From positions 10,912,001-10,976,000 of the forward strand of contig JBHGNT010000012.1 of the NCBI GenBank assembly GCA_043228905.1: 64,000 nucleotides of DNA. The letters run 5' to 3'. The notes beneath the pieces are model-generated. The model worked only from the letters and a program-made list of their open reading frames with translations. It made no database searches and was not told the origin of the DNA. Both the position numbers and the translations under genes were made by a program. This stretch comes from Azolla caroliniana. Lineage: Eukaryota > Plantae > Polypodiophyta. Shown one piece after another: positions 16,856 to 43,916 of the stretch. Within the stretch, counting starts at the first letter, position 1. The number at the start of each line of letters is the position of its first letter.

Positions 16856-17987
16856 CATGTATTGTTCGGGCCTCTTCAAACACTTCTCTCTATGATGCAT
16901 CGCCTTCTTTCGTTCTAACGATTGTGCCTCACGATGCTCCTGTAGTAAGTTCTTACTCATATCCTTTTCCATTGATGTCTTTGCACCTTTAGCCAAACTT
17001 TTAAGATTTGCACAAATGGAGCAATACCCCATGCGTACTTTACGTAGAATGATAACATTTGAAAACCGAGCTCTCCATAATCTTGTGAATTGGCTATATG
17101 TGACAGATTTATTACGTGAGTCCACCATATCAGATCGATAGACATCATAAACTTCCCGATGTGTGTAATTATCAAAGAGGTGCATCCTACCTGTAGTGGG
17201 CATTACCTCACAATTTAACTGAAAGTAACTTTTCATCCAACCAATAGCATGTCTTCCAATTGCACCTTTCATACTTGGAACCTCTTTACAATTGAGCATC
17301 TAATCCCCGCTAAATAGATGTTGTTGTACTCTATGCAGCCGCATGTTACTAACACATAACGCAATTTTGAATGCAACTCTACATATCTGTTGCACATGGA
17401 AGATATAATACTCGAATGATACTTTGATCCCTGTACATTTGTCAGACACTAGTTGCATATGTGACCTGAGGTAAGTGTCTTGCTCATCACCAGTCATCAA
17501 AAAATAGTATCGCCTTAATTCTCACAACTTTGATTTTCCAATCATAGACATACAACCACGGGCACAACATATTTTTTTGACATCAAATCCAATCTACTTA
17601 TCTGATGTCACCAAATTAAATCTAGCCAGACGAATTCTTTGTGGGATTCTTCTAATATGCATAGGGCTTCTAGATTTCTCTTCCTACATTGAAGTTGGTG
17701 TAACCTTATTACTATCCAATTCTTTGTTGTGACCATCGCCCATGATATTCAATTTTTCATTGGCGCTACCTTCATTCTCCGTATCTTTATTAATATCGTA
17801 TTCTTCAATAGAGAACTCTTCACATGTGTCATTATTCACATGCGTTGTAGGTGAAGATGAGCTCAGACAATATTCTTCGATAGAAAATGGTGAGTCTGTC
17901 GATAGACAATACTCTTCGGTAGAAAATGAAGAGTCTGATGACAAACAATATTCTTCAATTGAGAACGGTGGGTGAGTCTTCACTTAT
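16856..17987 (-). pseudogene. 5' part of the Sola1-like transposase, copy 1
   Basis: Near-identical to 39245-40406; start codon mutated to ATA; truncated just before the first catalytic Asp (LMIDGMDQ). Confidence 0.9.
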
Positions 17988-18294
17988 GGCTTAAGGTTCA
18001 CACAAAGCTCTTTAAGTTACGTGCTTGGGCTAATATAAAAAACTGATAAGCTCCTCTCTAAACATAAACTCCTCTCTAAACAGAAGCTCCCTCAATATAA
18101 TGTCTATATTATTTAATATTATATTAATACAATAAATAAAGATATTATTTTTAATATAATAATTGTATTCAACATATTAATAATTACTTAAACTAGTTAG
18201 TATAAAGTTAAATCAATTATTTTTTATACCTTATTAATCTGATAATATATAATTTAAATTAAATTTACTTTAGCCATCAAGTATAATATAATTA

Positions 18295-18680
18295 CAATCA
18301 TTACCAAGTCATATATATGTTGGTTTAAAGTTAAAATCATTGGTTAATTAATGGCACCCATACTTAATATAGAACTTCTCAATCATTGGTTCATTCATGC
18401 CCACCATTTTAAATATAAGCCTTTTCAATCATTGGTTCATTCATGGCCACATCTTTAATACAAAGCAATTAAGAGTCATAAAAATGTTGCTTTGAGTATT
18501 CAATCATTGGTTCATTCATGAACCTCTATCATTATTTCCTTCATGACCTTCAAAATCATTGTATGTTAGTTTGACTATTAAATAATCATTAATATGTTAG
18601 TTTGAGTATTTAATCATTGATGCATTCATAAGCATCATTTAATTCAAATCCATTAGAGAGTGATTGGTACAATCATTCAA
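18295..18680. promoter_or_regulatory. Cluster of CCAAT-box repeats (AATCATTGGTT) in the divergent promoter region, copy 1; copy 2 equivalent at ~38760-38945
   Basis: At least four AATCATTGGTT motifs plus degenerate copies, mostly ~45-75 bp apart, present in both copies. Confidence 0.5.
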
Positions 18681-20008
18681 ATCCAAAATAGGTCGTATCG
18701 TGTTCCTTTTTAAAACACAAAATTTAAACAGGAATATTGTGTCTTTGGGGGAACAATTTAGTATATGTGTGAAAAGATACCAAATTTTATGTCCAATTCA
18801 GACTTTTTTAGTGACATTTGCTATATTTTGTAACAACTAGCGGCCTTACTTAAAAAGGTTTTATGACCTATAATAGTTTAAAATAATAGAAAATAACCCA
18901 CGAATTACCTTTATGATACCAAATTTAAGTCTGTCATATGCAAATTCTCTACAATATGGATATGGAATCAATATAAGCCATACCTACCCTTCAATATGAT
19001 ACATATCCTTGTATAATTATTAAGATATATAATTTTCAAAGTTGAATAGCCCTTACTAGAATTATCTTCCGAATAAAGGACTATCCTGTTCACTCAATAT
19101 AAGATTGATATTTATAGTTTACCACAAATCGCTTGCTAGTTTTTGTCTTCGTCTACTTATGTATGTATTTTAATATACAACCTTAGTCTAGGTAACCACC
19201 TAACTTATGTTTTCACATGTCCTTTCTTAAATAGGCCGTTTGAGAACTTGTTGGACTGACTAGTGAAGAAGATAAAGCTCTGGATTCAGGGCTCTCCAAT
19301 TGAGACCCAGAAACTAATAGTTCCTCAGAACATGAAGAAAGGAAATAAGCTTCTCTTCAATGAGGAGACAAAATATCAACCATCCGATGATGTCAGCCAA
19401 AAGAAAATGTTAGCAGCTATTGGTGGTGAGGACCTTCTTGACTGTGATCTAACGGACAAGGAATGGTGTATGCAATACGTCGACTCCAAGAAAAAAGTCA
19501 TGTTGTATATAGTAAAGAAGAAGGGCAATGATCAGCTTGAAAATGAAACTGCATTTATGTATGGCTGTATTCTAAGATTTGACTGCGAAGATTCAGATTC
19601 AACCAACATTCTTGTAATGATAGAGTGCTCTAAGGGGGTACGTAAAGTGTACCTTTTTGAAGATCCACTGAGAAAGGAATCTTGTGGGCTAGATTCTTTT
19701 AAAAAAGATCTAGAAAGCTCACAAAACCTTATTGTCACCTTGAGGCCTTGTATACAAGGCCATGTAACTCTAAGGGAGCTCTTGCCCTCCCTAGTGAAGG
19801 CCCCGAAAAGGACATCTAAAGTGCAATCAAGACCACTAAAAAAGAAAACCACTAAAATGTCGAACTCTTACTCATCAAGCTCAAACGAAGATAAGGACAC
19901 TAGGGGGACACCAGGAGCTGAGTTGGCATCGGGTGTGTTGTCATCTGAGCAGAATAAGATACGGAGAGAGTTAATGCCACATAAACTAGTCAGAAAAGGG
20001 CAAGTGTT

Positions 20009-20691
20009 TGTCAGGAATAGTACTAAGATAGAGAAGGAATTAGTACTAAGAGAGGTAAAGAACTCTCGAGAGAAGGAAAGAGTGAGTGAGAGGGAGGGAG
20101 GGAGAGACACAGAGACACAGAGAGAGAGAGAGTGATGATAAGAAAAGATATATATTATGTGAAGAGAATGTACAGTAGTAGCTAGGAGGCTTAAGACTAG
20201 CGTTGAACCGATTTGGTTCGAAATAAACTAAACTATGATCGGGTTCCATCAAATTTTGTAGGAAGACCGATCTTGGGTTCTTTGTGAATCCCTTGAGTGC
20301 TTGATCCTTGTTGTTGTAATTATACGATAGTCGCTTCGAGTTGTTGTACACGTAACGTCAACTCCCCATGTTGTTGTTTTTCCAGCGCTAGTTGTTGAAG
20401 ATCCCCCAACAAACGATGATTTTCTTGTTTCTAGTGCTACAAATTTCTTTTTTAAGCACTGGAGCTCCAAGAAAACAGATTGGTATTCCTGAGCTCTAAC
20501 AGTTTCCATTTTACTAGGGAGGATAAGAGGATTAATAAGAGGAGGAAAGGAAGATACGGAAGGAAGAACGAGCAAAATCGGTTCAAACTGTCAGGAACAG
20601 TACTAAGACAGAGAAGGAATTAGTACTAAAAGAAGTATTAGTACTAAGAGAGGTGAAGAACTCTCAAGAGAAGGAAAGAGTGAGTGAGAGG

Positions 20692-20727
<36 letters not shown>

Positions 20728-21022
20728 TAATAAGAAAAGATATATATTATGTGAAGAGAATGTACAGTAGTAGCTAGGAGGCTTAAGACTAGTGTTGAAC
20801 CGATTTGGTTCGAAATGATGCCTTGTGCCTCCTTTTATAGTGTTCTGAGGACTACTCCTGAAGTTTCTAGAATGTTTCAGAGAAATTTGGAATATACATC
20901 AATTTCTATAATCAAACATAAATGAAAATAATATTTTACATATTATATTGTATGGTTTAATAGTCAAGAGCTCGACCCATGTAGCATAAGGGCATGGGTT
21001 CGAGTCTTGCCATATCATGACA
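20009..21022 (-). mobile_element. Element C: internally deleted Tcn1-like chromovirus (5' LTR 21022-20589, gag start, R-U5 remnant of the 3' LTR at 20223-20009)
   Basis: TSD GTGTT at 20004-20008 and 21023-21027; the empty site is seen in copy 2 at ~36965. TGTCA...TGACA ends. Gag remnant METVRAQEY...KEPKIGLPTKFDG is homologous to B gag. Confidence 0.92.
20953..21012 (+). promoter_or_regulatory. tRNA-like A/B-box cassette, antisense in U3 of element C
   Basis: TGGTTTAATAG, 33 nt, GGTTCGAGTCT. Confidence 0.5.
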
Positions 21023-24000
21023 GTGTTTAATGTGCCTATAATACACATCCATCGGCCCCTTATAGATGAAAAAACAGGACGAAGACCACTTGAGATCAGA
21101 GAGCCATGTTTAAAATCTCAAGAAAAGAATGAAAATTAATCCACATGCTACCGTTGTGCCTTTTATTGTTATGGTGGATCTCGAAGAATGTGAAGCCACT
21201 GAATACTTTGACATTAGAAAGCATGATCAATACAATTACTTTGTAATTGGTGGATCGCATTTGGCGGAGGCACATGAGAGAACATCCAACGACTTTCTTC
21301 TTCGAGTATGCCGAGTGCAAAATTTACGTGGGCCTCAACACTGAAGAGGCAAAGCTATTGGCATGGGACCACAATAACAATAATGACTATAGGCAGAAAA
21401 TGTCATCGATTGAGCGTATAAGGTTCTTCCACCACGAGTATTTGGACGTCAAACAAAAGTTCGATGTGAAGCTACATCCAGGCCTACAACGTCTTCGGAA
21501 ATATGAGTCTTGGTTTCAACTTGCCTTTAGAGATGGAGAAGTATGGGCCCTACAAGATCAAATCTTCTCAATGTGGGAGAATAAGGAGGTCAAGGGTCAA
21601 CGACAAAAGAAATGTAAGGTAGACCCTCAACTAGAATTAAAGTCACAAGAAGCCAAGAAAATTGATTTGACAATTGAAGAAGCGGCTGACGACATGAAGT
21701 TGTCTCCGTGGAGAGCGATGCAAGGTATTAAGGACGAGCAGCTTCTTGTGTCTGTTTTGTCAAGGGTTGTGGCGAAAGATTTAAGCCTTGAAGAAATGGT
21801 CACTGAGTTCAATAAGTAAGTCTTTCAAATAGTGATATTGAATTCAATATGGTGCAATTGAAAGCTCTAATCTTGTTTTCTAATTTCACAGTCATAAGGT
21901 GTACATGAAGATCCAAGAAGTTATGATGAAACAACTTGGATGTATAACTTGGGAACAAGTGACCGAGGATTATCCTCTAACGTCTTCATATAAGGCGTTA
22001 TGAAGAGCCAAAAAAGAAAAGGATCGTTGCTTAGTCAAGGCGTACGAAATTGAGGAAGATGGCTCCTTCAAAAACTTTAGCCACAAAAAGGATATTACGA
22101 GAGATGTTTACTACAACATGGTTTGCGGCGATGTCATTGACATGATCCAAAAAGTGCCAAAGAAGGAATATATGCTAATGATTGCTGATATTCCATACGG
22201 ATTTCGAATGGCAGGGTCATCATACGACGATGAACCGTTTAGGTTTAAACAGTTAGAGAAAATGGTCAAGGATTTTTTTGAGCTAACGACTGCATCCTTG
22301 TGCAAAATAGTTGTCTTTCATAGTATGGACCAAGGGTACTCGGTAGCTCAAGCTTTGAGATCTCGTTGCCATGGAATCGAGAACCTTGCATGGTAAGGAT
22401 TATTTATATGCCTCATTCACTATATTGCCTTTCTTAAGATTGTTCAATCTATTCTTAACTCGATGTAATATTTGTTATAGGATAAAAACCAATGTAAATA
22501 GAGGGCCAACCTTTCGGTTCGTAAATGCCATTGAATACATTACGGTTGGCTACTTCGATGAAATTAAGAAACAAAGAATCAAGGAGCATTCTAATGAAGT
22601 GGGACGTTCAAATCAGCTGGTATATCTATCAGTGACACGGAAATTGTGACATGTCACCACAACAGAACAGGGACTTGTCAACCTATACCAAAAACCTCAA
22701 CGACTTATGATGTGCTTGGATATTAGACCTCTTTTCAGGCACAGGTATTCCGTGAACTAGGTTAACGATCTTGAGATAACCAATATTGAATCTTTTTTGT
22801 TTGAGAACTAAATCTTCTTGTTACTTTCTTCACATGGACAACGTCTGCATGTGCATTGAAGCTCTTTAGAAACAAAGTTGCATTGGAGAAGGACGAGGAG
22901 CGAGTTATATTTATAAACATGAGGATTAAGGCTTTGTGGGAGTGCCCAGACCAGGACGAGGATGTCGTTGCAAAGAACCTCGTTGATACTGAAAGGTTTC
23001 AACCTGCTTCGTGAGAGCCTATTCCTTTGTTAGCAGGGGAATCAGGGGAGCTAATAGATCTTGATGATGAGCATATAGAAGATATTTCGTTGGCTCGGCT
23101 AACAGGGGAAGACAATGCACGTATAGCTGAAGAGACTTCTATACAGGATGAACAAGAAAATGACATTGATAATTTGCTTGCTATGTAATAGACTCTTTTA
23201 AAAATGCGAAATGTATTGTTTGGAATTCACATTATTAATACAAATTTTGGGTTTTACTTGGTGGATTCTATTCTTTATAATCTTCTATATGTTTCAATTT
23301 TATTTCTATATACTTGGTTAGTAGACTTATGACTTATTTCTATATACTTGGTTAGTAGACTTATGACATTGGTTTCACCGCGTGCATTGTTGAATACCAA
23401 TATGGAGAAACATGAATTAGTTTAAATTAAGGTTGATTTTGGTCAAACTTTACCTTAACATAACATGGTCGTAGAATTGTTGCCATGACTGTCCATGTTG
23501 TTATTATGGATCTTTGTCTTCTATTGTTAAAACTATTATGTTTCTCTTCCATTGTTGCTTAGATTGTGTAGTGTGTTGATAATGGTTCCACTAGCGTTAT
23601 TCGCATGTTTTTATACGCTTGTAGTTCCACTAGCGTTATCGTTCAGAGTTTGATCCCGTATGAGTCACCCAAGGAATAGATTAGATCAATTTTAAATACA
23701 AATATGAAAGCCTTAATAGGTTTGTTATTTCCACCACATTATCCTAAAGTTCATTGTCTTACATTGTCCACAATTATATACATATGGTTGGATCCCATAC
23801 GAACAAACTGAGGAATAGATTAGATCAACTTTAAATACAAGTATTAAATACCTTAATAAGTTAGTTATTCCAATCACATTATCCTAAAGTGCACTATCCT
23901 ACATTGTCTACAATTATATACATGCGAGTATGGGTCAAAGTATAAATTATAACTCATTTTATTAGTATGGTTACAAGTACACCTCATATTTTTGTAAAAC

Positions 24001-24586
24001 TTACCAAATTAATATAAGTCTTTAACTTAGTGTTTCCCATGTCGCACATTAGTGAGAAATTGAGCCATTGTTGAACTTTATTATGCCTACATTAACTTAT
24101 CAACACATCCAAACTTATTTGAATTTCTAATGATCTCCATTCGTAGACCTATCATGTATTTTTATATTTGCAAATTCTAATCAAGTTGTGGAACATGTGA
24201 TACTAGTGCGTCCAATTTTTGTAGAGAGGGTATATTTGGATATTTTCAAGAAGATTCTATAAGTGGATTGCGCGATCCTTCCACTTCTGAACGCGAACGT
24301 GTTTCTGCCGATTCGGCTACAGGCCTGCCAACTTGTAACATATATAGTATAATTTAAATCTAAAATGTAATTTACACTTACAGAGGAGATAACCCCATTG
24401 AATTGTATGATTAATGGAGTAGTCCTTTTATGGGGGAGTTTGTTGGCATAAAAGGCCAACTCCACCCAAATATTGTAGCTCTAGTTTGAACATGTCCTCA
24501 CGGTTAGGGCTAAGTTACCCTAACTATATATGAGAGACTGTGTATTGTAAATATAGGTTTGGTGGTAAATGTAAAAAAAAACTTCT

Positions 24587-31850: not shown

Positions 31851-33467
31851 GAACAACAGCACGGCTACGAACAACCCATGGTAGTAAGAACATAGGATTT
31901 CGGGGTCACCACGCCCCAATCATGATAAACTCCCCTACCTATAATTATGGAAAAAAAATGACACAAACACTATTTAAAGGCCATGCACACCATATGAGAA
32001 AAGCAAGTACTAACGGTCCACACGATGCGTGGTCTTAACTCCCAGTATGGCCGGGAAGATTCTGAATCTAGGGCATAAGGCCACGTGTCGAGAACCGAGG
32101 CACTTACAAAAAGAAAGACACCACAAACATAATTCTCATTTCTGCAAAAAAGTTGAAGCTCTCTCATCCTCAGTTCAATACCTCTCTCACTACCAAACTC
32201 CTTGTAACCAAGCGCTCTCTCCCTCTCTGACTCCTAACTTCCATCCCTACTCACCTTCCTGCTCTTTCGAGTATCGGCGGATGCCGGTCACCGTCTGTCA
32301 CCAGTTCCTTCGCATTGTCCGTCACCGGTTCCGTCGCACCGTCCGTCGCCGGATGCCGGTCATTGTCCATCGTCGGATTCGTAGCCGAATGCCGATCACT
32401 GTCCATCGCCAGATCCATCCGGTTGCCAGCTCCATCCGGTTTTCGATTATGTCATCGGCCGGTTTGAGTTTCTTCACCGGCCGGTTCGGGCACTTAGCCA
32501 CATATGTCCATCTAGACAAATGTGGCTTAAGTCCAACTATTTTTTATGTGCTCTTAACACAGATAAAATATGATGGATCTCAATCTGCTTATATCGCTGG
32601 AGCCTAAACTTTTCCTATCTATGTGGGATATTTCACAGTTTTATTTTTCTCTTTTTCTTTTGCAAAACTTGATACCCACATAACTTGACACTTAGATGTT
32701 CGTTTCTTATGGAGTAAAAGTGCATTCGAAAGCTCTTCATGACCTCTATCTTTTTGTACTAAGCTATTAAACTTATTTAAAATAGTATTTTCACTATTAT
32801 TGTTTTATATAATTCATACTCGATTTCGTATGTTTTATGCAATTTTCACACCATTGCCGAAAATCTTCACGACATCCATCCCCACCAAACCGCACGTCCT
32901 CCGGTACGTGCCAAGAAGAGAGAATGTGAGATTTCGGCAATGGTGATCAGCATGAATTCTCAACGTCGAGCATGTCTGTTTCTTTGTACTCGAATCATTG
33001 TTGCCACCCAATCCACCATATCATTCGTTTTTTCTTTGTTTTACCATGACTTCTTGTCATGGCCCCTTGCTCTCTTCTTGAGGATAATCGTTTAAGTCTC
33101 ATGAATGTTCCACCTTTGTCTCGATGATCTCCTTGCTCAAAGCACTTTGACTCGTTCACAGTAGTGTCTTTGATAGACGTTTTGATCACATCCTTCGGAT
33201 CCTCATGGCTTGCTTGGCCATTGCCATCCCTTGTCATATTTTGCTCAAACTCTTTGTTGCACATATCAGCTTTAACTCTTGCTTCTTCCCCATCACTATC
33301 CTTGACTTGGGTCTTACATCGGTTAATGCCCAAGTCTCTAGAACGATTGTGGAGGGACCCATACATTTCCATCGTTCACCTTTTTCGTGCTACACTTAGC
33401 CATTTCCATCTTAAAGTTGTTCGAATCAGTATTGACCTTTGCTTCCTCGCTGCCAGCTTCCGTCTCT

Positions 33468-33503
33468 AACACATTCGCGTTCACAAGTGGAAGGATTGCG
33501 CAT
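33468..33503 (+). repeat. Left TIR of copy 2
   Basis: Reverse complement of 42348-42383 with 3 mismatches. Confidence 0.95.
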
Positions 33504-34513
33504 TCCACTTGTAGAATCTTCTTAAAACGAAGCAAATACACCCTCTCTACAAAAATTGGATGCACTAGTATCACATGTTCCTCAACTTGATGAGAATTTG
33601 CAAATATAAAAATACATGATAGATCTACGAGTGGAGATCATTAGAAATCATGCAAGTTTAGACATGTTGATAAGTTAATGTAGGCATAATAAAGTTCAAC
33701 TATGGCTCAATATGTCACTACTGTGCGACAAGGGAAACACTAACTTAAAGACTTATATTAATTAGGTAAGTTTTACAAAAATATGAGGTGTACTTGTATC
33801 CATACTAATAAAATGAGATATAATTTATACTTTGACCCATATGTGCATGTATGTAATTGTGGAAAATGTAGGATAGTGCACATTAGGATAAGTGATTGGA
33901 ATAACTAACTTATTAAAGTATTCAATACTTGTATTTAAAGTTGATCTAATCTATTCCTCAGTTTGTTCATATGGGATCAAACCATATGTTTATAATTGTG
34001 GACAATGTAAGGCAGTGAACTTTAGGATAATGTCGTGGAAATAACAAACCTATTAGGCTTTCATACCTGTATTTAAAATTGATCTACTCTATTGTTTAGG
34101 TGATTCACACAAGATCAAACTCCGAACGATAACGCAACTGGAACCATTATCAACACACTACACAATCTAAGCAGCAATGGAATAGAAGCATAATAGTTTT
34201 AACAATAGAAGACAAAGATCCATAATAACAACATGGACAGTCATGGCAACAATTATAGGGCCATGTTCTGTTAAGGTTAGCTTGGACCAAAATCAGCCTC
34301 CATTTAAACTAGTTCATGTTTCTCCATAAGTTTGGTAGTCAGATATGCACGCGGTGAAACCAATGTCATAAATCTACTAATCAAGTATATAAAAATAAAA
34401 TTGAAACATATAGAAGATTATAAAGAATAGAATCCACTAGGTAAAACCCAAAATTTGTATTAATAATGTGAAATCTTAACAAATCGTCAGTGTCAGATTC
34501 TTCATAGAGTCTA

Positions 34514-37500
34514 TTACATAGCAATCAATTCATCAACGTCATTTTCTTCATCATCTTGTGTAGAACTGTCTTCGGCTATACGTGCATTGGTTTCCCCTGT
34601 TAGCCGAGCCAACGAAATATCTTCTATAAGCTCATCATCAAGCTCTATTAGCTCCCCCGGTTCGCCGGCTAACGGAGGAATAGGCTCTCGCGAAGCAGGT
34701 TGAAACCTTTCTGTATTGGCGAGGTTCTTTGCACCGACCTCCTCATCCTGGTCTGGGCACTCCCACAAAGCCTTAATCCGCATATTAATAAATATAACTT
34801 GGTCCTCGTCCTTCTCCAATGCAATTGTATTTCTAAACAGCTTCAATGCACATGCTGACATAGTTCCTGTGATGTAAGTAACAAGAAGATTTAGTTGTCA
34901 AACGAAAAAAAAGTGATTGGTTATCTCAAGATCGTTACCCTAGTTCAAGGAATACCTGTGCCAGAAAAGAGATCTAATATCCAGTCTCCTTCGACAAAAA
35001 ACATCTCGATCAAGCGCATCATAAGTCGTTGAGGTTTTTGGTATGGGTTGACAAGTCCCCGTTCTATCGTGGTGACATGTCGCAATTTCCGTGTCACTGC
35101 TGGATATACCAACAGATTTGAACCTCCCACTTCATTAGAATGCTCTTTGATTCTCTGCTTCTTAATTTCATCGAAGTAGCCAATCGTTATGTATTCAATG
35201 GCATTAACGAACCGAAAAGTTGGCCCTCTATTTACATTGGTCTTGATCCTATAAAAAATAATTCAGCGAGTTAAGAATAGATTCAACAACCTTAAGAAAT
35301 GCAATATAGTGAAAGACACCTATAAATAATCCTTACCATGCAAGGTTCTCGATGCCATGGCAACGAGATCTCAAAGCTTGAGCTACCGAGTACCCTTGGT
35401 CCATACTATGAAAGACAACTATTCGCCACAAGGATGCGGTCGTTAGCTCAGCGAAATCCTTGACCATCTTCTCCAATTGTTTAAACCTAAACGGTTCATC
35501 TTCGTATGATGACCCAGCCATTCGAAATCCGTAAGGAATATCCGCAATCATTAGCGTATATTCCTTCTTTGGCACCTTCTGGATCAAGTCGATGACATCA
35601 CCGCAAACCACATTGTAGTAAAGATCTCTCGTAATATCTTTTTTGTGGCTAAATTTTTTAAAGGAGCCATCTTCCTCCATTTTGTACGCCTTGACTAAGC
35701 GACGATCCTTTTCTTTTCTGGCTCGCTCGAGATGTGCAAGGAAGGATGTAGGGAAATCGTGTATATCCTTAACTTCTCCTTGTTTCTTGCCTTGACACGG
35801 TTTCTAATAGAAGCAATAGGACATCAGGTATTATTATACAAGCTCTACATATGATGAAAGGGTAATGAAAAAACATGAATACTAACCCAATCCTTGAATG
35901 CAATAAAATACTCTGATAACGCCTTATACGAAGACGTTAGAGGATAATCCTCGGTCACTTGTTCCCAAGTTATACATCCAAGTTGTTTCATCATAACTTC
36001 TTGGATCTTCATGTACACCTTATGACTGTAAAATTAGAAATCAAGATTAGAACTTTGAATTACACCAGATAGACTACAATTTCAGTATTTGAAAGACTTA
36101 CTTATTGAACTCAGTGACCATTTCTTCAAGGCTTAAATCTTTCGCCACAACCCTTGACAAAACCGACACAAGAAGCTGCTCGTCCTTAATACCTTGCATC
36201 GCTCTCCATAGAGACAGCTTCATGTCATCTGCCGCTTCTTCAATTGTCAAGTCAATTTTCTTGGCGGCTTGTGACTTTAACTCTAGTTGAGGGTCAACCC
36301 TACATTTCTTTTGTCGTTGACCCTTTACCTCCTTATTCTCCCACATTGAGAAGATTTGATCTTGTAGGTCCCATACTTCTCCATCTCTAAACGCCAATTG
36401 AAACCAAGACTCATACTTTCGAAGACCATCGGACCTAACATTATCATCTACCACAATGCCGACTTCATGCAGACATTGACGTCGAAGGCCTGGATGTAAC
36501 TTCACACCAAACTTTTGTTTCACGTCTAAATACTCGTGGTGGAAGAACCGTATACGCTCAATGGACGACATTTTCTACCTATAGTCATTATCATTATTAT
36601 GGTCCCATGCCAACAGCTTAGCCTCTTCGGTTGTGAGCCCAACATAAATTTTGCACTCGGCATACTTGAAGAAGAAAGTGGTTGGATGTTCTCTCACAAG
36701 TTGCCGACGTGCCTCTGCTGAATGCAATCCACCAATGACAAAATAATTATATTGATCATGCTTTCTAATATCAAAATCTTCAATGGTTTCACATTCTTCA
36801 GGATCTACCATAACAATAAAAGGCACCACAGTGGCATGAGGATTAATTTTCATTTTTTTCTTGAGATTTTGAACATGCATGCGGTGAGGCTCTCTAATCT
36901 CAAGTGGTCTTCGACCTGTTTTTTCATCAATAGGGGGCCGATGGATGTGTGTTATAGGCAAATTAAACACTTGCCCTTTCCTGACCAGTTTCCGTTGCAT
37001 TAACTCTCTCCTTATTTTATTCTGCTCGGATGACAAAACATCTGAGGCCAGCTCAGCTCCTGGCGTCCCCTTATTATCCTCCTCTTCGTTTTCACTTGTT
37101 GAATCCGTATCCGACATTTTGGTTGTCTTCTTCTTTGGTGGTCTTGACTGGACTTTGGATACCCTTTTTGTGGCCTTCAATGGGGAGGGCACTTCATCTC
37201 TTAGAGTTACATGGCCTTGTATATAAGGCCTCAAGGTAACAATAAGGTTTTGTGAGCTATCAAGTGCTTTTTTGAACGCTTTTGGCCCACAAGATTCCTT
37301 TACTAAAAGGTCTTCTGAAAGGAACACTTTACGTACCCCCTTGGAGCACTCTATCATTACCAGTATGTTGGCCGAATCTGCATCTTCGTAGTCAAATCGT
37401 AGAATACGGCCATACATAAGTTAGGTAATCACGTATTTAAGAAAGTATATGCAAAAACATAAGTTAGGTAATCACGTAGATTAAGGTTGTATATTAACAT

Positions 37501-38392
37501 GAAGAACAGTTCCCAGTAGCAGTCCTATATTCAAAAATCTATTATAGGCAGGGCTATTCAACCTAGAAAATATATATCGTAATAAGTAAACAGGGTTATT
37601 TATTCTTTTAAATAGTAGGTATGACTTATATAGATTCCAAACCTATATTGAGGAGAATTTGCTATCGTAAAGGCAATTTGTGGATCCTTTTCTACTATTT
37701 TAAGCTAAAGTAGGTCATAAAACACCTATAATTAGAGCATGTTTTTTTTCTGAAGGAAAGTCAACATAAAAAAGACTGATTTTGCTAGACAATTTGATAT
37801 CTTTTCCACCCCATAATTATTTGTTACCCCAAAAACACAATTTTTCTCTCTCAAAGCCTTCTTATATACAAGAACTCGATACGGCGTATCGAGTTCCTGT
37901 TTAAAACCTACACTTTAAACAGGAACTCGATACGGCGTATCGAGTTCCTGTTTAAAATTCAAACTTTAAACACGAACTCGATACGCCGTATCGAGTTCGT
38001 GTTTAAAGTGTAGGTTTTAAACACGAACTCAATACGGCGCCGTATCGAGTTCGTGTTTAAAGTGTAGGTTTTAAACAGGAACTCGATACGCCGTATCGAG
38101 TTCGTGTTTAATGTTTAGGTTTTAAACAGGAACTCGATACGCCGTATCGAGTTCCTGTTTAAAGTGTAGGTTTTAAACAGGAACTCGATACGCCGTATCG
38201 AGGTCCTGTATAAAAAGCAAAAACAAATTATGAACTTGATACGTTGTATCGAGTTCATGTATAAAGTTTGTATTGTATACATGAACTCGATACGGCGTAT
38301 CGAGTTCTTGAGAAACGAAACATATTTACAAAAATGTCCACAGTGTCAGAGGCCTACCTGGAGTCCTCGCGCTCGATTCTCTTTGAAGACAT
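34514..38392 (-). CDS. Spliced ParB-like domain plus beta-class N4C/N6A DNA methyltransferase, copy 2. Exons: 38392-38358, 37417-36102, 36025-35887, 35803-35337, 35248-34956, 34866-34514. Damaged by one TAG at 36577 and a deletion at the exon 2 start
   Basis: Introns 2-5 are GT-AG, 76-89 nt, and keep frame; the exon 1 donor is in phase with the copy 1 exon 2 acceptor. The spliced protein contains VVCGDVIDLI..LMIADIPYG (motif IV), AWIKTN..AIEYI, NPYQKPQRLMMRLIE and WILDLFSGTGTMSACALKLFRNTIALEKD (motif I). The N-terminal part has LPITHI..R..HVQNLKKKM..PFIVMV..YFVIGGLHSAEA (ParB/Srx-like). TATA box on the minus strand at ~38542. Confidence 0.88.
37872..38307. repeat. Nine palindromic units GAACTCGATACG(G/C)CGTATCGAGTTC at a 51-bp period, in intron 1 of the methyltransferase gene
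   Basis: Units start at 37872, 37923, 37974, 38025, 38079, 38130, 38181, 38232 and 38283. Arms extend into TTTAAACAG/CTGTTTAAA. Confidence 0.95.
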
Positions 38393-39244
38393 GGTTGATC
38401 GTGTGGAAGTGGAGGCGGAGATCGCGCTTTCGTGCTTTGTGCTCTGTGTGCTTTGTGTGCTTTGTGTGCTCTCTACGTTCTGTGTGCTCTGTACGCTCTG
38501 TACGCTCTGGTGAGTGAAATATGACGAGGTCTTCCTATTTATAGGGATTGAACACATTGGTTAAAGTAACCATAGTCACCTTAACCAAGGTTGGTAACTT
38601 TGAGGATAGTTAGTTGGTAACCATAGTCACATTAACTAGAGTAACTTATGATTGTATTAATGATTACAAAGTCAAACTAACATATTGATCAATCTTTTAT
38701 AGTCATAACAACCTACAATGACTTCAAAGGTTATAAAGGAGACAATGATAGAGGTTCATGAATGTACCAATGATTGATTACTAAAAGCAACAAATTTTAT
38801 GACTCTCAAATGCTATGTATTAAAGATGTTGGCATGAATTAACCAATGATTGATAAGTCTAATATTTAAAATGGTGAGCATTAAAGAACCAATGAGTGAG
38901 ACGTTCTATATCAGAATGGGTGCCATTAATTAGCCAATGATTTTAACATTAATCCAACATATTCATGGCTTGTTAATGATTAGTTTTATATTTTACTTGA
39001 TTTAACTTCATATAGATCTAGTTTATATAATAATTGATATTTTAAGTACAATTACTTTATTAAAAATATTTTTTTGATGTATTGTATTAATAGAATATTA
39101 CATAATATAGACATTCTATTGATTTGACTTTTGTTTAGAGAGAAGTTTATGCTTAGAGGGGAGTATATGTTTAGAGAGGAGCTTATTAGTTTTTTTCCTT
39201 ACCCTAAGCACATAACTTAGAGAGCCCTATCTAGACCTTAAGCC

Positions 39245-42025
39245 ATGAGTGAAGATTCACCGTTCTCGATTGAAGAATATTGTTTGTCATCAGACACATC
39301 GTTTTCTACTGAAGAGTATTGTTTGTCAACAGAGTCACCATATTCGATTGAAGAATATTGTCTATCGACCGACTCACCATATTCTATCGAAGAATATTGT
39401 CTGAGCTCATCTACAGGGAATGTAAATAATGACACATGTGAAGAGTTCTCTATTGAAGAATACGATATTAATAAAGATACCGAGAATGAAGGAAGTGCCC
39501 AGGAAACATTGAATAACATTGGCGATGGTCACAACAGAGAATTAGACTGTAACAAGGTTACACCAACCTCTATGTAGGAAGAGAAATCTGGGAGCCCTAT
39601 GCATATTAGAAGAATCCCACGAAGAATTCGTCTGGCTAGATTTAGCTTGGTGACATCAGATAAACAGATTGGATTTGATGTCAACAAAATATGTTGTGCC
39701 CGTGGTTGTATGTCTATGATTGGAAAATCAAAGTTGCGAGAATTAAGGCGATACTATTTTTCGATGATCGGTGATGAGCAAGACACTTACCTCGGGTCAC
39801 ATATGCAACTAGTATCTGACAAATGTACGGGGATCAAAGTATCATTCGAGTATTATATCTTCCATGCACAACAGATATGTAGAGTTGCATTCAAAATTGC
39901 GTTATGTGTTAGTAACATGCGGCTACATAGAGTACAACAACGTCTACTTAGCGGGGATCAGATGCTCAATTGTAAAGAGGTTCCAAGTATGAAAGGTGCA
40001 ATTGGAAGACTAGCTATTGGCTGGATGAAAACTTACTTTCAGTTAAATTGTGAAGTAATGCCCACTACAGGTAGGATGCATCTTTCTGATAATTATACAC
40101 GTCGGGAAGTTTATGATGTCTATCGATCTGATATGTTGGGCTCACGTAATAAGTCTATCACCTATAGCCAATTCACAAGATTATGGAGAGCTTGGTTTTC
40201 AAATGTTATTATTCCTCGTAAAGTACGTATGGGGTATTGCTCCATTTGTGCAAATCTTAAAAGTTTGGCTAAAGGTGCAAAGACATCAATGGAAAAGGAT
40301 ACGAGTAAGAAGTTACTACAAGAGCATCGTGAGGCACAATCCTTAGAACGAAGGAAGGTGATGCATCATAGAGAGAAGTGTTTGAAGAGGCCCGAACAAT
40401 ACATGTGCTTAATGATAGATGGCATGGACCAGAAGAAGACATGCTTGTCGCATATGCGGAGGCTCCCCAAAGATGTCAATGATGAGTGCCTTGTTCAAAT
40501 GCACTTGGTGGGATGCTTGGCTTATAATAGGTCTGTTCGACCTCACGTCTTCATTACTTACCCCAATGTTCACAATGACCCTAACCTAACAATTACAGTG
40601 ATTCACCGAGTTTTGATGTCTTGGGGACAACCTTTCCCCCTTGTTCTATACATTCAATTGGACAATACTGCTAGAGAGAACAAAAATTCAACTGTATTTG
40701 GCTATCTAAGTATGTTGGTCAACCTAGAATTGTTTAGGAAAGTGAAAGTCAATTTCCTTTTGGTTGGCCACACACATGACCATATAGATCAGATGTTTAG
40801 CACATTCTCCAGACAGTTGTCTCGGCATGATGCTTTCACTTTACCTAAACTATTTGATGTCATTTGTGATGCTTATACACCACGCCCAAAAGTGTTACAC
40901 TTGAAGGAGGTATATGACTTTAAGAGATATATATTAGATGGGGGTGGTGGGAATGTTAAAGTGCTTGCTCAGTTAAACAATATAAGTTTCAATCACATTT
41001 TTTTGATAAAGAAAAATGGAATAAGTGGTTCTACACTTTTGTATGCTAAACAATATTCATCTTCTACAACATGGGAACCTGAAGGTGGTTGCCAGTTATT
41101 ACTTTGTATGCCGAGTACAATTGTCCATGGAGCTAGGCAAATGCCAATTGAGAAGAAAGGACAGTTGCAGAGCGACTTGGTATCAGAACAAAAACGGTCA
41201 TGGCTCCAAGCCTTAGAAGAAAAAAGAAAGCATATTGAGGCCGCCAAGAAATATGCCGCACAACAAGACACGTCATGGTGGGATGTATTTTATAGTGATC
41301 AAAAAGAAATTATAGACAATTGTGTATCTGTTGATAATTGGAATTTGGAAACGCCATTCACATGGTCGCTGCAACATGATCGCGTAAATAGAAGTCCGGA
41401 GCAACTAGTAAATGCGATTAATGACAGCTTGGTCCATCCACAACAAAGAGACATTTATGTGGGACCAAGGATGACGAAAGCAGCCGAAGCTAGATAGCAA
41501 GGAAATTTGCAAGAGCTCACCGCGGGGATGTTGATTGCAATGTCGGCTGATGAGAACTCACATGGCCACCAATTTTGGGTTGGTAAAATTCTAGAAGTGC
41601 TAATGCATGAAATAGAAAACACGATCAAGTCTATAAATGTTCATTGGTACAACACTAGAAGTACAAATGCTTTTACAGGTAAGTATACATTGGAGATGAT
41701 TGAATGCCAAACAAGAAGGGGAGGTAGGAAAAGGAAGCGAAACATTCGTAACACCTCGACCCTTGATATCTCTGATGTGGATATCATCGTGTACGACTTC
41801 ACACTTACAAAAGCCGAACGATTAAGGAAGTCAACAATAGATATAATAAAAGAAAAATTACCAAGTCTACAAGGTGGCTCGAGTCAAAGGCAAACGAGAT
41901 TTGCTACATATAATCTAGAGTCAAACCATTTGGTTTATGACGAAGATAATGCACTGATTGGTACATCCGAGGATGATGAGGAGGAATCGTCATTGTATAT
42001 TAGTTATAGTAGTGATTCTCCGTAA
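39245..42025 (+). CDS. Sola1-like (DUF7869-type) DDD transposase, ~926 codons with two in-frame TAGs (39575 and 41495)
   Basis: The three ORF segments share one frame. Motifs: CCARGC, C..AF, YSQFTRLW, CSIC, LMIDGMDQ, YIQLDNTARENKN and FLLVGHTHDHIDQMFS. Flanked by TIRs and a 4-bp TSD as in Sola elements. The superfamily call rests on motif recall. Confidence 0.85.
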
Positions 42026-42347
42026 AGGAGTGATCGTGAATGTATATTTGGCTATTAAGTGTAACTACATTCCGCTTGTAACAAATCGAGTAATATAAAA
42101 TCATGTGTTTTGAATTCTTATGATTTCTAAAAAATCGTTTCTTATAAAATAACATTGGTTGTAAAGTTTGTGATATAAATTGAGAATGTATCTTTTTGAA
42201 ATTCGTCTTTTTTTAGTTACTTCTAAATCACGAAAATAGTGGATTTTTAACCTTTTTCATAGTATGTTTGAACATGTATGATACTGGTATCAATGTGTTT
42301 TGTAAAATCATTGAAAAACCCCTAAAATTTCCCTTATCCTTCCATTT

Positions 42348-42383
42348 ATGCGCGATCCTTCCACTTGTGAACGCGAACATGTT
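42348..42383 (-). repeat. Right TIR of copy 2
   Basis: Reverse complement of 33468-33503. Confidence 0.95.
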
Positions 42384-42387
42384 CTCT

Positions 42388-43916
42388 TGGGTCTTACATC
42401 GGTTAATGCCCAAGTCTCTAGAACTAATGCGGGGAAAGGCTCTTCATGGCCATTCACCATCTTCGCCTTGACGTCATTTTCCATAGCTATCTCTTCAAAC
42501 TCATGGGCCTCGTACCCATCGATCCTTATTATTGAGCAATCCTTTATTTTGCTTCTCTCTTCGTCGCATGTGTTATCTTCGACCATCGGTTCTTCGCCAT
42601 CACTTCCCGTCTCTTGGGTCTTACATCGGTTCTCGGACGCAATTGCCCAAGTCTCTGGAACAAGTGTGGAGAAAATTTGACTGTTGTCATTAGCTGTATT
42701 ATCTTGGTCCTTCTCTTCCTTTTCGCCACCATCCGTCTCTTGAGTCTCACGTTGGTTCTCGGACACAACTACCCAAGTCTCTAGATGAAGTGTTAGGATA
42801 GTCTCCACATGACCATCCGCCATAGACTCGTTCATAGCCATCTCCGACTCGATTTCGTTTTTCGTGGCTATCTCTTCAATCTCATGGGCCTCGTACCCAT
42901 TGACCTTCTTGATCGAGCAAGCTTTGATTATCCTTCTCTCTTCGTCGCATGTATTCTTTTCGACCTTCGGCTCCTCGCCGACACCTTCCGTCTCTTGGGT
43001 CTCACGTTGGTTCTTTGACGCAACTGCCCAAGTCTCTGGAGCATGTGTGGAGAAAATCCGGCCATGGTCATTGTCAACGCTTGTTATCTTGTTTATAGTC
43101 ACCTCCTCGATGTCGTCTTTAGCGGCTAGATCCGCAATTACACTAGCCTCGCTCTCTTTATCTCCATTGATGCACGCTTCGATTTGGCTTGTTCCATCAT
43201 CCGTTGTTTCGAACATGAAACATGTTCCGAAAACATTCGACCTCCTTTGAAATGGCCATCATCGTCCTCGAGTCATCATCAATCTTCTTTTCATGTTGGA
43301 TGCGTTGTTTAGGCGTCACGACTTCTTTAGATGGTTTTGATTTTTCTCCACTTGGTCTTACCAAGTCAATATCATCGAGCCATCGATGACGCCTGTCGAT
43401 CTTGTTGCATGCTTGCTTCACCGCAACCCAGTCCACCACAAGCCCGTTCGCTTCGGTATCATCTTCGAGGAGATTCCCCAACTCTCGTATATCCTTCATG
43501 TCCATAGCTTTCAAGAAGTACAAAGTTTTGTCTTCCTCAAGTAGCACTTGGTCCATGGCGGGGAGACGACCAAACATCTGGTCGAACTCGTCGTATACCC
43601 TCGAGATGCTCATCTTCTTATTTTTCTTCTCTATCCATTTCATGAGGACATGTCGAGTCATCCTTGTCGAGTCTTCAGTCGCGAACCCCGCTAATATCGG
43701 TTTCTCGAACTCAAACCATGTTGTCTTACCTTATTGAATCTCGATGATGCGTCTTTGGATGTTGTTGGAAATAAGTCTCTTGAAGCTTGCGATTTGAAGT
43801 GCTTCGGACACGTCCCTTTGATTCATCGCCCTTATATATGCATCAAGGAACTTCGTAATGTTCCTTCCGTCGAATTGACCCTCGAGCTCTACGACACGGT
43901 CAACGGCCTTCTCCAC
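42388..43916 (-). pseudogene. gag-like ORF of element F followed by acidic peptide repeats (..PETWA.ASENQRETQET..), continuing at 33463-32995
   Basis: QFDGRNITKFLDAY gag N-terminus; repeated ETW..NRCKTQE units on both sides of the DNA transposon; no pol motifs. Confidence 0.7.

Follow-up and report, generated by a model that had tools for sequence, protein, structure and literature searches.

What does a fern DNA transposon do with a gene for a ParB-like protein fused to a putative DNA amino-methyltransferase, and does that gene belong to the element at all? Plant transposon silencing is understood almost wholly via 5mC; whether land plants have 6mA or 4mC at all is disputed. The locus that raises the question lies in a stretch of 64,000 nucleotides of the Azolla caroliniana genome (the window), and the element itself, copy 1, is delimited in this way:

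33468-42383: transposon copy 1, 8.9 kb, bounded by 36-bp TIRs and a CTCT TSD
33464-33467, no strand: left TSD, CTCT, single in uninterrupted paralogous empty sites
33468-33503, plus strand: left TIR, 36 bp, 5'-AACAC start; the same TIR is present in L002, L003, L005, L006 and copy 2
42348-42383, minus strand: right TIR, pairing with the left one
42384-42387, no strand: right TSD, CTCT, duplicate of the left CTCT

The TIR pair is 92% complementary over 36 nt, and paralogous repeat units at ~42600 and ~42990 read CCGT-CTCT-TGGGTC uninterrupted, being equivalents of the empty site. As these equivalents near the element carry a single CTCT, the 4-bp duplication is real, and the 36-bp TIRs and 4-bp TSD described in an earlier note on this DNA are borne out by the TIR pairing and by the empty sites alike. 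A second TSD of the family, TAGA/TAGA, occurs in the liverwort Riccia (L007), while none was recognisable for L001 and L002, which are high-copy-repeat contigs whose ends may be chimeric. Flanks at contig ends are A/T-rich, and the depth of the element in DNA runs is very high. Copy 1 belongs to a genuine high-copy cut-and-paste DNA transposon.

Its transposase gene comprises the following parts:

39245-42025, plus strand: transposase gene, 927 codons, intronless, with in-frame TAG at 39575-39577 and 41495-41497
approximately 40472-41053, plus strand: DUF7869 core of the transposase, by Pfam
40418-40420, 40661-40663 and 40787-40789, plus strand: candidate catalytic D codons, by conservation and model

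The ORF at 39599-41497 is recognised by Pfam as DUF7869 (E 8e-51), and across the family the transposase is ~920 aa and intronless. In the AF2 model (pLDDT 80) the top Foldseek matches are all of the RNase-H fold, at an E of only ~2e-3, with RNase HI, IstA, the PFV and RSV integrases and TnsB among the PDB matches of that fold. The model places D84 on beta-1, D165 after beta-4 and D207 on the next helix; these residues are kept in 23, 26 and 25 of 26 sequences, respectively, so that the triad ends in Asp (H-x-x-I-D-Q) in all but one of the 26. The transposase is, according to the modelled structure, an RNase-H-fold protein with a D-D-D triad, and the DDD transposase of the earlier note agrees with this model and with the conservation of the triad. 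No mention of DUF7869 was found in the literature searched, and the Atlas search returned DUF7869 clusters alone.

As far as the superfamily is described in the papers which cite its original report, the element resembles Sola, and Sola1 especially (Bao et al. 2009, via PMC3845634 and PMC3627910), in its cut-and-paste mode, its TIRs, the 4-bp length of its TSD and its DDD transposase of RNase-H fold, and it shares with insect Sola1 a TIR length of ~36 bp. The differences are in the detail: the preferred TSD of Sola1 is AWWT (PMC3845634), which neither CTCT nor TAGA matches, two instances being too few to define a preference, and the TIR agrees with that of insect Sola1 at 17/36 positions, which falls short of significance (shuffle p 0.07). 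The fern element also has palindromes in an array and a gene for a methyltransferase, neither of which was found in the Sola descriptions consulted. By the length of its TSD (CTCT, TAGA) and by the triad the element fits Sola, its membership of Sola1 being putative after a comparison of TSD, triad and TIR, and Pfam calls the transposase core DUF7869 only. The statement that Sola elements are transposase-only proved too strong, since Sola2 elements with Fanzor1 cargo have been described (PMC3627910).

Head-to-head with the transposase, on the opposite strand, lies the second gene:

38393-39244, no strand: region between the two start codons with short repeats, a putative bidirectional promoter, inferred from gene orientation
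38358-38392, minus strand: exon 1, 35 nt, ATG plus 11 codons, donor CAG/GTAGG; protein and donor conserved with L002 and L005
36102-37417, minus strand: exon 2 remnant with ParB/Srx-like domain and helical domain; first ~300 nt and acceptor lost at ~37420-37445
approximately 36967-36575, minus strand: ParB/Srx-like domain in exon 2, GGLHSAEA at 36733-36710
36577-36575, minus strand: exon 2 nonsense codon TAG; all other copies read CAG in DNA run X2
35887-36025, minus strand: exon 3, 139 nt, 76-82% identity to L002/L005; GT-AG conserved in four elements
35337-35803, minus strand: exon 4, catalytic motif IV D-I-P-Y-G at 35542-35528; D-[IFA]-P-[YH]-G kept family-wide
34956-35248, minus strand: exon 5, NPYQKP at 35049-35032, motif I FSGT(G) at 34968-34957; Pfam N6_N4_Mtase E 4e-7; splice sites
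34517-34866, minus strand: exon 6, with the last part of the AdoMet-binding region, acidic tail, stop at 34519-34517; AG acceptor and phase conserved in L001, L002 and L005

The window copy is dead and not intact: it has nonsense codons in both genes (the two in the transposase and the TAG of exon 2 listed above), and exon 2 has lost its splice acceptor together with ~300 bp of its 5' part.

Comparison among family copies, with searches for the methyltransferase done exon by exon, found all splice sites of this gene to be conserved GT-AG and the exon lengths to be conserved as well; introns are 45-65% identical with indels, against 76-82% for the exon 3 block (L002, L005). By these comparative criteria a six-exon splicing of the gene is supported, and the six exons counted previously hold once the 35-nt exon 1 is included. 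A five-exon gene with an intergenic array was considered and rejected on finding this conserved mini-exon. The element was found in no RNA run: two runs presumed to be RNA gave no matching reads, and run X15 covers intron DNA and is therefore not spliced RNA.

The methyltransferase gene has a pN/pS of 0.16, compared with 0.25 for the transposase, which indicates that it is constrained at least as strongly, and by these substitution patterns it is maintained by purifying selection as a component of the element. The head-to-head pair was found in every long fern contig (3/3; L001, L002, L005), and also in Ceratopteris richardii (L009) and at two loci of the liverwort Riccia sorocarpa (L007 and L010); the full set of transposase, methyltransferase and palindromes is shared by three intact fern contigs, Ceratopteris richardii and the two Riccia sorocarpa loci. 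Between the fern lineages that share the pair inside TIRs synonymous sites are saturated. Fern lineages A and B have the same AACAC start of the TIR, and family TIRs are ~35 bp long. A homologue of the methyltransferase in Chara is found without a DUF7869 neighbour. These comparisons show an old transposon family, very abundant in ferns, of which Riccia sorocarpa has a related form with the same gene pair.

It might be argued that the second gene was captured from the host, or lies there by chance, and has no function for the element; all that speaks for this is that plant TEs in general tend to pick up fragments of genes. The same pair inside TIRs of synonymous-saturated ferns and of a liverwort, and the purifying selection on the gene, reduce the likelihood of such a capture to practically nothing, and we regard it as already refuted. 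The view that the two divergent genes form a family trait, the cargo being no one-off acquisition, is upheld by these same data.

What, then, does the gene encode? The family protein is ~860 aa and predicted to consist of an N-terminal region of ~230 aa with no assigned fold, a ParB/Srx fold, a helical domain similar to the ParB DBD, and a permuted beta-class amino-methyltransferase. The last of these is assigned by PF01555, whose match to the window exon (E 4e-7, 30.6 bits against a gathering threshold of 26.7) and to L001 (E 8e-8) lies above gathering, and whose match to a full-length Ginkgo homologue, P0087, reaches E 7.6e-18 and 65.7 bits. Motif IV precedes motif I, which is the order of the permuted beta class, and reads D-I-P-Y-G, a variant and not the canonical DPPY; its Asp, Pro, aromatic and Gly residues and the F-x-G-x-G of motif I are kept in ferns, Ginkgo, Riccia and Chara. 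The domain is, as judged from profile and motifs, a beta-class N6A/N4C amino-methyltransferase. Its best sequence matches in the PDB are the N6A enzymes M.MboIIA, M.RsrI, CcrM and DpnA. N6-adenine would be a likelier target than 4mC because motif IV has Asp, and it should be kept in mind that PF01555 enzymes switched repeatedly between 6mA and 4mC (PMC8885841). With the methyltransferase region of Ginkgo as query, the search for a prokaryotic donor returned only marginal non-family matches (E 1e-5 to 1e-3), so no donor can be named.

The ParB/Srx fold is assigned from structure models. The AF2 model of this domain (pLDDT 83) finds its relatives in Foldseek with E 1e-4 and probability 1.0, and VIA structure matches of the region to ParB, PadC, Noc and KorB reach Z 11-11.7. 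The N-domain superposes on C. crescentus ParB with VIA Z 11.0 and rmsd 2.2 A over 97 residues, and is matched to PadC at Z 10.4 and to sulfiredoxin and SerK at Z 7-8; two-domain models align 184-201 residues of ParB, KorB and pNOB8 ParB (Z 8.8-9.9), and the helical domain alone gives Z 4.0 against the ParB DBD. By sequence, no ParBc match was obtained from Pfam (E up to 10) or from single-sequence or profile searches of PDB sequences, and DUF6551 is matched weakly (E 0.006-0.07). The phosphate-binding Arg of the ParB P-motif (GxxR) is replaced, the motif reading G-G-x-H-S/T, which makes CTP-clamp behaviour doubtful. A homodimer prediction for the region scored 0.00 and weighs neither way. The combination of ParB and beta-class amino-methyltransferase named in the earlier note is nevertheless recovered by the fold matches, PF01555 and the motifs.

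Whether such a domain methylates DNA in vivo has to be weighed. It could be a modifier of RNA or protein, or a non-catalytic DNA-binding accessory; DIRS1 elements, for instance, carry an inactive methyltransferase. Consistent with this are the non-canonical motif IV (D-I/F/A-P-Y/H), weak Pfam matches in the motif region to UPF0020, a family of RNA methyltransferases, and the existence of ParB-fold fusions to RNA-type methyltransferases (PMC12704722). On the other hand, the key residues of motifs IV and I are kept from ferns to Chara, the nearest solved relatives are DNA N6A methyltransferases, and a methyltransferase fused to a ParB/HTH-like module is more readily understood as acting on DNA. 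We give this alternative a small chance. No clear signature of methylation emerged from CpG depletion or from polarised substitution spectra. Whether the protein actively methylates DNA, with the element itself as its substrate, seems to us an evenly balanced question.

The third component is a noncoding one:

37868-38307, no strand: palindrome array, ~8.6 units of 51 bp, in intron 1; 0 matches expected by chance

Each unit carries a 23-bp palindrome, AACTCGATACG-S-CGTATCGAGTT, and its core is conserved in L002, L003 and L005, the remainder of intron 1 not being so, which makes it the sole conserved DNA there. Half-sites differ by lineage, with AACTCGATACG in fern A, AAGTCGATGCC in fern B and TGTATGCG in Riccia, and so do the spacing of the units (51, 41 and 32-40 bp) and the spacers. 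The cis palindrome array noticed earlier is in this way a conserved feature across these contigs and Riccia.

Such an array might act through its structure, as an intron-1 hairpin that supplies small-RNA pathways, thereby limiting the element itself or serving as a decoy, or as a cruciform: it lies within a predicted transcribed intron, its 177-nt arms adjoin without a spacer and pair at 91% complementarity, and the predicted RNA fold has -309 kcal/mol (z -45). Conservation of the 23-bp core only, with spacing and spacers varying, is more what one would expect of a site recognised by its sequence than of generic long dsRNA under selection, and we consider the structural role improbable.

If it is a sequence that is recognised, the transposase or a host factor may be what binds it, the palindromes being promoter elements or a transposition enhancer, internal or subterminal, and the methyltransferase acting independently on TIRs, on excised DNA or genome-wide. 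Subterminal position is typical of transposase-binding sites, as in Ac or En/Spm, and the cognate Riccia palindrome, TGTATGCGCGCATACA, is present not only internally but also near each of the two ends, in the subterminal regions; the fern array is located 50-530 bp from the methyltransferase start codon, adjoining the divergent promoter. However, fern A and fern B keep one and the same AACAC start of the TIR while the half-site changes, which means that the palindrome is not a copy of a terminal transposase site, and ParB-family proteins typically bind palindromes via the domain modelled after the ParB N-domain. This alternative we consider unlikely, and docking of the methyltransferase protein on the palindromes possible, as a tentative suggestion.

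The descriptive part, a TIR family with a DUF7869 transposase, a six-exon ParB-methyltransferase gene and intron-1 palindromes, we hold with high confidence. Beyond it we propose that the ParB-like and helical module may dock on the element's palindromes, probably as a dimer, and that the docked methyltransferase would methylate exocyclic amino groups on element DNA. Family copies would thereby gain a private mark, which might work against the silencing of the divergent promoters by host 5mC/H3K9, or might gate transposition; Dam methylation is known to gate transposition of IS10. In its full form, with parS-like palindromes, a ParB-like loader and a fused enzyme writing 6mA or 4mC so that silencing is escaped or tuned, this self-targeting system is speculative and probably not correct in all its parts, whereas the explanation overall, with descriptive and inferred parts, is the best we can offer and stands at somewhat below even chances. 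If true, streptophytes would have in the self-targeting system their first writer of a DNA mark other than 5mC, and one owned by a transposon.

No published description of a design with transposase, ParB-methyltransferase and palindromes was found for land plants, and several known systems share parts of it. In phages and prophages the ParB-CTPase fold occurs fused to N6_N4 methyltransferases (PMC12704722; ParB-Tls loci, PMC4738411), and the fern protein resembles the phage fusions in having a ParB fold N-terminal to a PF01555 enzyme on a mobile element. It differs in being encoded by a eukaryotic gene of six exons inside a transposon, in its marginal similarity to prokaryotic members (best non-family E 1e-5 to 1e-4), in the replaced P-motif Arg and in the extra N-terminal region of ~230 aa. 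Enzymes of DNA marks are carried also by other mobile elements: TET/JBP by fungal KDZ and other DNA transposons (PMC12730594), DNMT by retrotransposons (PMC5890265), Dam-like methyltransferases by retrotransposons (bioRxiv 10.64898/2026.05.21.726589) and methyltransferases by Mariner elements of giant viruses (PMC3627910). The fern element shares with all of these an encoded enzyme able to write or edit DNA marks, conserved as part of the element, but has a permuted beta-class PF01555 enzyme with ParB, in a cellular TIR transposon and in another host group; TEs carrying the adenine methyltransferase Dam are reported absent from Streptophyta (bioRxiv 10.64898/2026.05.21.726589).

To the extent that Arabidopsis VANDAL elements and their VANC protein are described in citing papers (Hosaka et al. 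2017, cited in PMC12730594, PMC12973397), they too combine an accessory protein with family-specific noncoding motif arrays; VANC, as presented there, is not such an enzyme and causes 5mC loss, whereas the fern accessory is a putative methyltransferase. N4CMT of bdelloid rotifers is, like the fern protein, an intron-bearing PF01555 enzyme connected to transposons, presumed nuclear in the fern case; it is the only characterised eukaryotic PF01555 enzyme and is stated to have no eukaryotic homologues (PMC8885841). Whereas the fern gene is multi-copy cargo of the TE itself with a ParB-like fusion, N4CMT belongs to the host, is present in a single copy, has a chromodomain as its fusion partner and acts to silence TEs.

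A very abundant fern family, which has a liverwort relative, keeps a ParB-fused amino-methyltransferase under selection. If the enzyme is active, this would mean a new strategy in the conflict of transposon and host and a sequence-addressable methyltransferase module; if inactive, it would still be an undescribed accessory gene defining a DUF7869 (Sola-like) transposon lineage, and would give DUF7869 a function.

The window holds one more member of the family:

16851-24303, minus strand: copy 2, inverted and degraded, ~90% identical to copy 1

Its TIR lies at 24269-24303, and it has no palindrome array. It was earlier credited with the same gene pair, which is correct for the methyltransferase gene, present with frameshifts, a 1-kb insertion (20009-21022) and exon 1 missing, and only partly so for the transposase, cut after ~380 codons and retaining roughly its first third.

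We show that this transposon family keeps a ParB-fold amino-methyltransferase gene and its putative cognate palindrome array under selection. In the window the element occurs twice, and its limits can be placed as follows:

33468-33503 and 42348-42383: terminal inverted repeats (TIRs) of copy 1, 36 nt, 92% complementary (inverted-repeat search)
16851-24303, inverted: second element copy (copy 2), about 90% identical to copy 1

The sequence CTCT stands immediately outside both TIRs of copy 1. This copy interrupts a short tandem repeat, and two neighbouring units of it, at about 42600 and about 42990, read CCGT CTCT TGGGTC without a break. When the flanks are joined and one CTCT is removed, the sequence of these uninterrupted units is restored, which is direct evidence of insertion with a 4-bp target-site duplication (TSD); the 36-bp TIRs and 4-bp TSD of the earlier note are thereby borne out. 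The host tandem repeat itself (33164-33470, 42308-43216) is open as an acidic, repetitive 302-aa ORF. Window bases 1-166 match the copy-1 transposase (40628-40793) in reverse at 94.6% and are probably the rest of copy 2, with nested insertions of some 16.7 kb between them and position 16851. Relative to copy 1, copy 2 has an insertion of about 1 kb in methyltransferase exon 2 (20009-21022), and it has neither exon 1 nor the palindrome array, a single half-site of the latter being left near 18700.

The exon model of the methyltransferase gene comes from minus-strand comparison with three intact elements found on fern contigs as neighbours of transposase homologues (L001, L002 and L005), and homology searches were run exon by exon, each exon as a separate query.

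38392-38358, minus strand: exon 1, ATG and 11 codons, donor CAG|GTAGG
37868-38307: palindrome array, 8.6 units of 51 bp
...-36102, minus strand: exon 2, predicted to be joined to exon 1 at 38358|~37433 or the equivalent in intact copies; 5' part missing in the window copy
36025-35887, minus strand: exon 3, 139 nt
35803-35337, minus strand: exon 4, carries motif IV
35248-34956, minus strand: exon 5, carries motif I
34866-34517, minus strand: exon 6, stop at its end

All junctions are GT-AG in the four elements (window copy, L001, L002, L005) and their phases agree. Coding lengths of exons 3, 4 and 5 are equal in the window copy, L002 and L005 (lineage A), and exon 5 of L001 differs by 3 nt; the introns are 45-65% identical between elements, with many indels. 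Between lineages synonymous sites are saturated, with pN at 0.13-0.15; without correction, pN/pS comes to 0.16 for the large methyltransferase exon and 0.25 for the transposase, and copies 1 and 2 compared with each other give 0.17 over 188 codons. A five-exon gene, with the palindromes lying between the two genes, is ruled out by the conserved mini-exon 1. The six exons previously proposed from the sequence therefore stand, and the mini-exon puts the palindrome array inside intron 1.

Exon 5 meets the Pfam gathering score for N6_N4_Mtase, and a full-length Ginkgo homologue matches the same profile at E 7.6e-18. Since motif IV (D-I-P-Y-G) precedes motif I (F-S-G-T-G), the enzyme belongs to the permuted beta class, and among solved structures the closest to it by sequence are the N6-adenine enzymes M.MboIIA, M.RsrI, CcrM and DpnA. 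No sequence profile detected a ParB domain in Pfam and PDB-sequence searches. When the C-terminal half of exon 2 is modelled with AlphaFold (pLDDT 83), the model matches only ParB, PadC, Noc, KorB, Spo0J and sulfiredoxin (Foldseek E 1e-4, probability 1.0), with VIA Z of 11-11.7, an N-domain that superposes at 2.2 A over 97 residues and a two-domain alignment covering 184-201 residues of ParB, KorB and pNOB8 ParB. The family motif is V-I-G-G-x-H-S/T-x-x-A, without the Arg of the ParB P-motif. Identification of the product as a ParB-amino-methyltransferase has thus held, the methyltransferase by its PF01555 profile match and the ParB fold by the structure model and not by sequence profiles. Fusions of a ParB fold with PF01555 are common among phages and prophages (PMC12704722).

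The head-to-head gene pair lies within TIRs in three out of three fern contigs of sufficient length (L001, L002, L005), recurs in Ceratopteris richardii, where the methyltransferase gene is unannotated, and is present at two loci of the liverwort Riccia sorocarpa, one of which (L007) has TIRs starting AACAC and a TAGA/TAGA TSD; these occurrences confirm the earlier reading that the cargo is a component of the family. The L005 element seems fully intact: its 35-bp TIRs match at 100%, and every reading frame is open. In a different DUF7869 lineage of Riccia (L011, CM100799.1, 6753-12884) the transposase is head-to-head with a Peptidase_C48 (ULP-like) gene and there is no methyltransferase, so the transposase superfamily carries different cargo in different lineages. 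A methyltransferase homologue of Chara braunii (L008, BFEA01000138.1, 10001-12013) is intronless and codes for 670 aa, and no DUF7869 ORF was found within 10 kb of it; another Chara protein, 1825 aa long, matches in three stretches. In the DNA sequencing run X2, contigs at least 85% identical reach word depths in thousands along the whole element stretch, and all of them have CAG where the window copy has TAG (36577-36575).

The array's 15-bp core, CGATACGNCGTATCG, is present 7 times, where chance alone would give 0. Over the 1.2-1.8 kb between the genes of the window copy, L002 and L005, only a 23-bp palindrome and exon 1 with its donor are conserved, and unit spacing differs between elements (51, 41 and 32-40 bp). 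The more distant ferns of lineage B (L001, Ceratopteris) have instead the palindrome AAGTCGATGCC-N-GGCATCGACTT, and that of Riccia is TGTATGCGCGCATACA, at subterminal positions too. The TIR start AACAC is constant throughout, while the palindrome varies by lineage, and such co-variation suggests that one of the proteins encoded by the element binds this DNA sequence-specifically as a dimer. If transcribed, the array is predicted to form a very stable hairpin. The region between the start codons (38438-38509, 38560-38640) contains a (TGTGCTCTG)n tract together with repeated motifs resembling AACCATAGT. Both are seen again in diverged relatives (L005 5416-5520, L001 9130-9241) and may be promoter elements or sites of protein binding.

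Pfam assigns the transposase ORF (39599-41497) to DUF7869 with E 8e-51, and 39245-42025 reads in one frame as 927 codons with two internal TAGs; intact relatives are intronless and 865-932 aa long. They occur in ENA sample contigs (up to 90% identity), Ceratopteris richardii (55%), Adiantum, Ginkgo, many loci of Riccia sorocarpa and, more distantly, an oyster. For the core, modelled with AlphaFold at pLDDT 80, the top PDB matches are all of RNase-H fold (RNase HI, IstA, PFV/RSV integrases, TnsB) at modest E of about 2e-3, and three Asp at the expected DDE/D triad positions are conserved in 23-26 of 26 transposase sequences:

40418-40420, 40661-40663 and 40787-40789, plus strand: candidate triad Asp codons

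The window copy is dead, with nonsense codons in both genes, two in the transposase and one in the methyltransferase. The TAG at 41495-41497 replaces a Trp kept in transposase relatives. That at 39575-39577 (codon 111) is common to copy 2 (within 16826-17983, minus strand) and is followed 7 codons later by an in-frame ATG; the subfamily either spread while encoding a shortened transposase or was mobilised in trans. The methyltransferase has lost the first ~98 codons of exon 2 by a deletion of about 300 bp, and its exon 2 acceptor is changed from AG to AC. As its ends are intact, the window copy might still be moved in trans.

DNA-modifying enzymes are known in other mobile elements: TET/JBP in fungal DNA transposons (PMC12730594), DNMT (PMC5890265) and Dam-like enzymes (bioRxiv 10.64898/2026.05.21.726589) in retrotransposons, and methyltransferases in giant-virus Mariners, with Fanzor in Sola2 (PMC3627910). 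The present element, with its predicted DNA-modifying enzyme, falls into the same general category. Transposable elements with adenine methyltransferases were reported absent from Streptophyta (bioRxiv 10.64898/2026.05.21.726589), and our literature search, with Repbase entries outside its scope, found no land-plant TIR transposon with a ParB-methyltransferase gene.

We propose that the ParB-like and helical module would dock on the palindromes of the element and that the enzyme would methylate the DNA of the element itself, with N6-adenine the more likely target. The mark may counter host silencing of the divergent promoters, which VANC does by other means, or may couple transposition to replication, by analogy with Dam for IS10. 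Two further stretches are without a Pfam match, namely the N-terminal ~230 aa of the methyltransferase protein (L005 residues 1-240; YGRILRLDYED...), absent from copy 1, and the conserved transposase C-terminus (41507-42025, plus strand; FWIGKVL...VHWYNT), and each may function in chromatin reading or in targeting.
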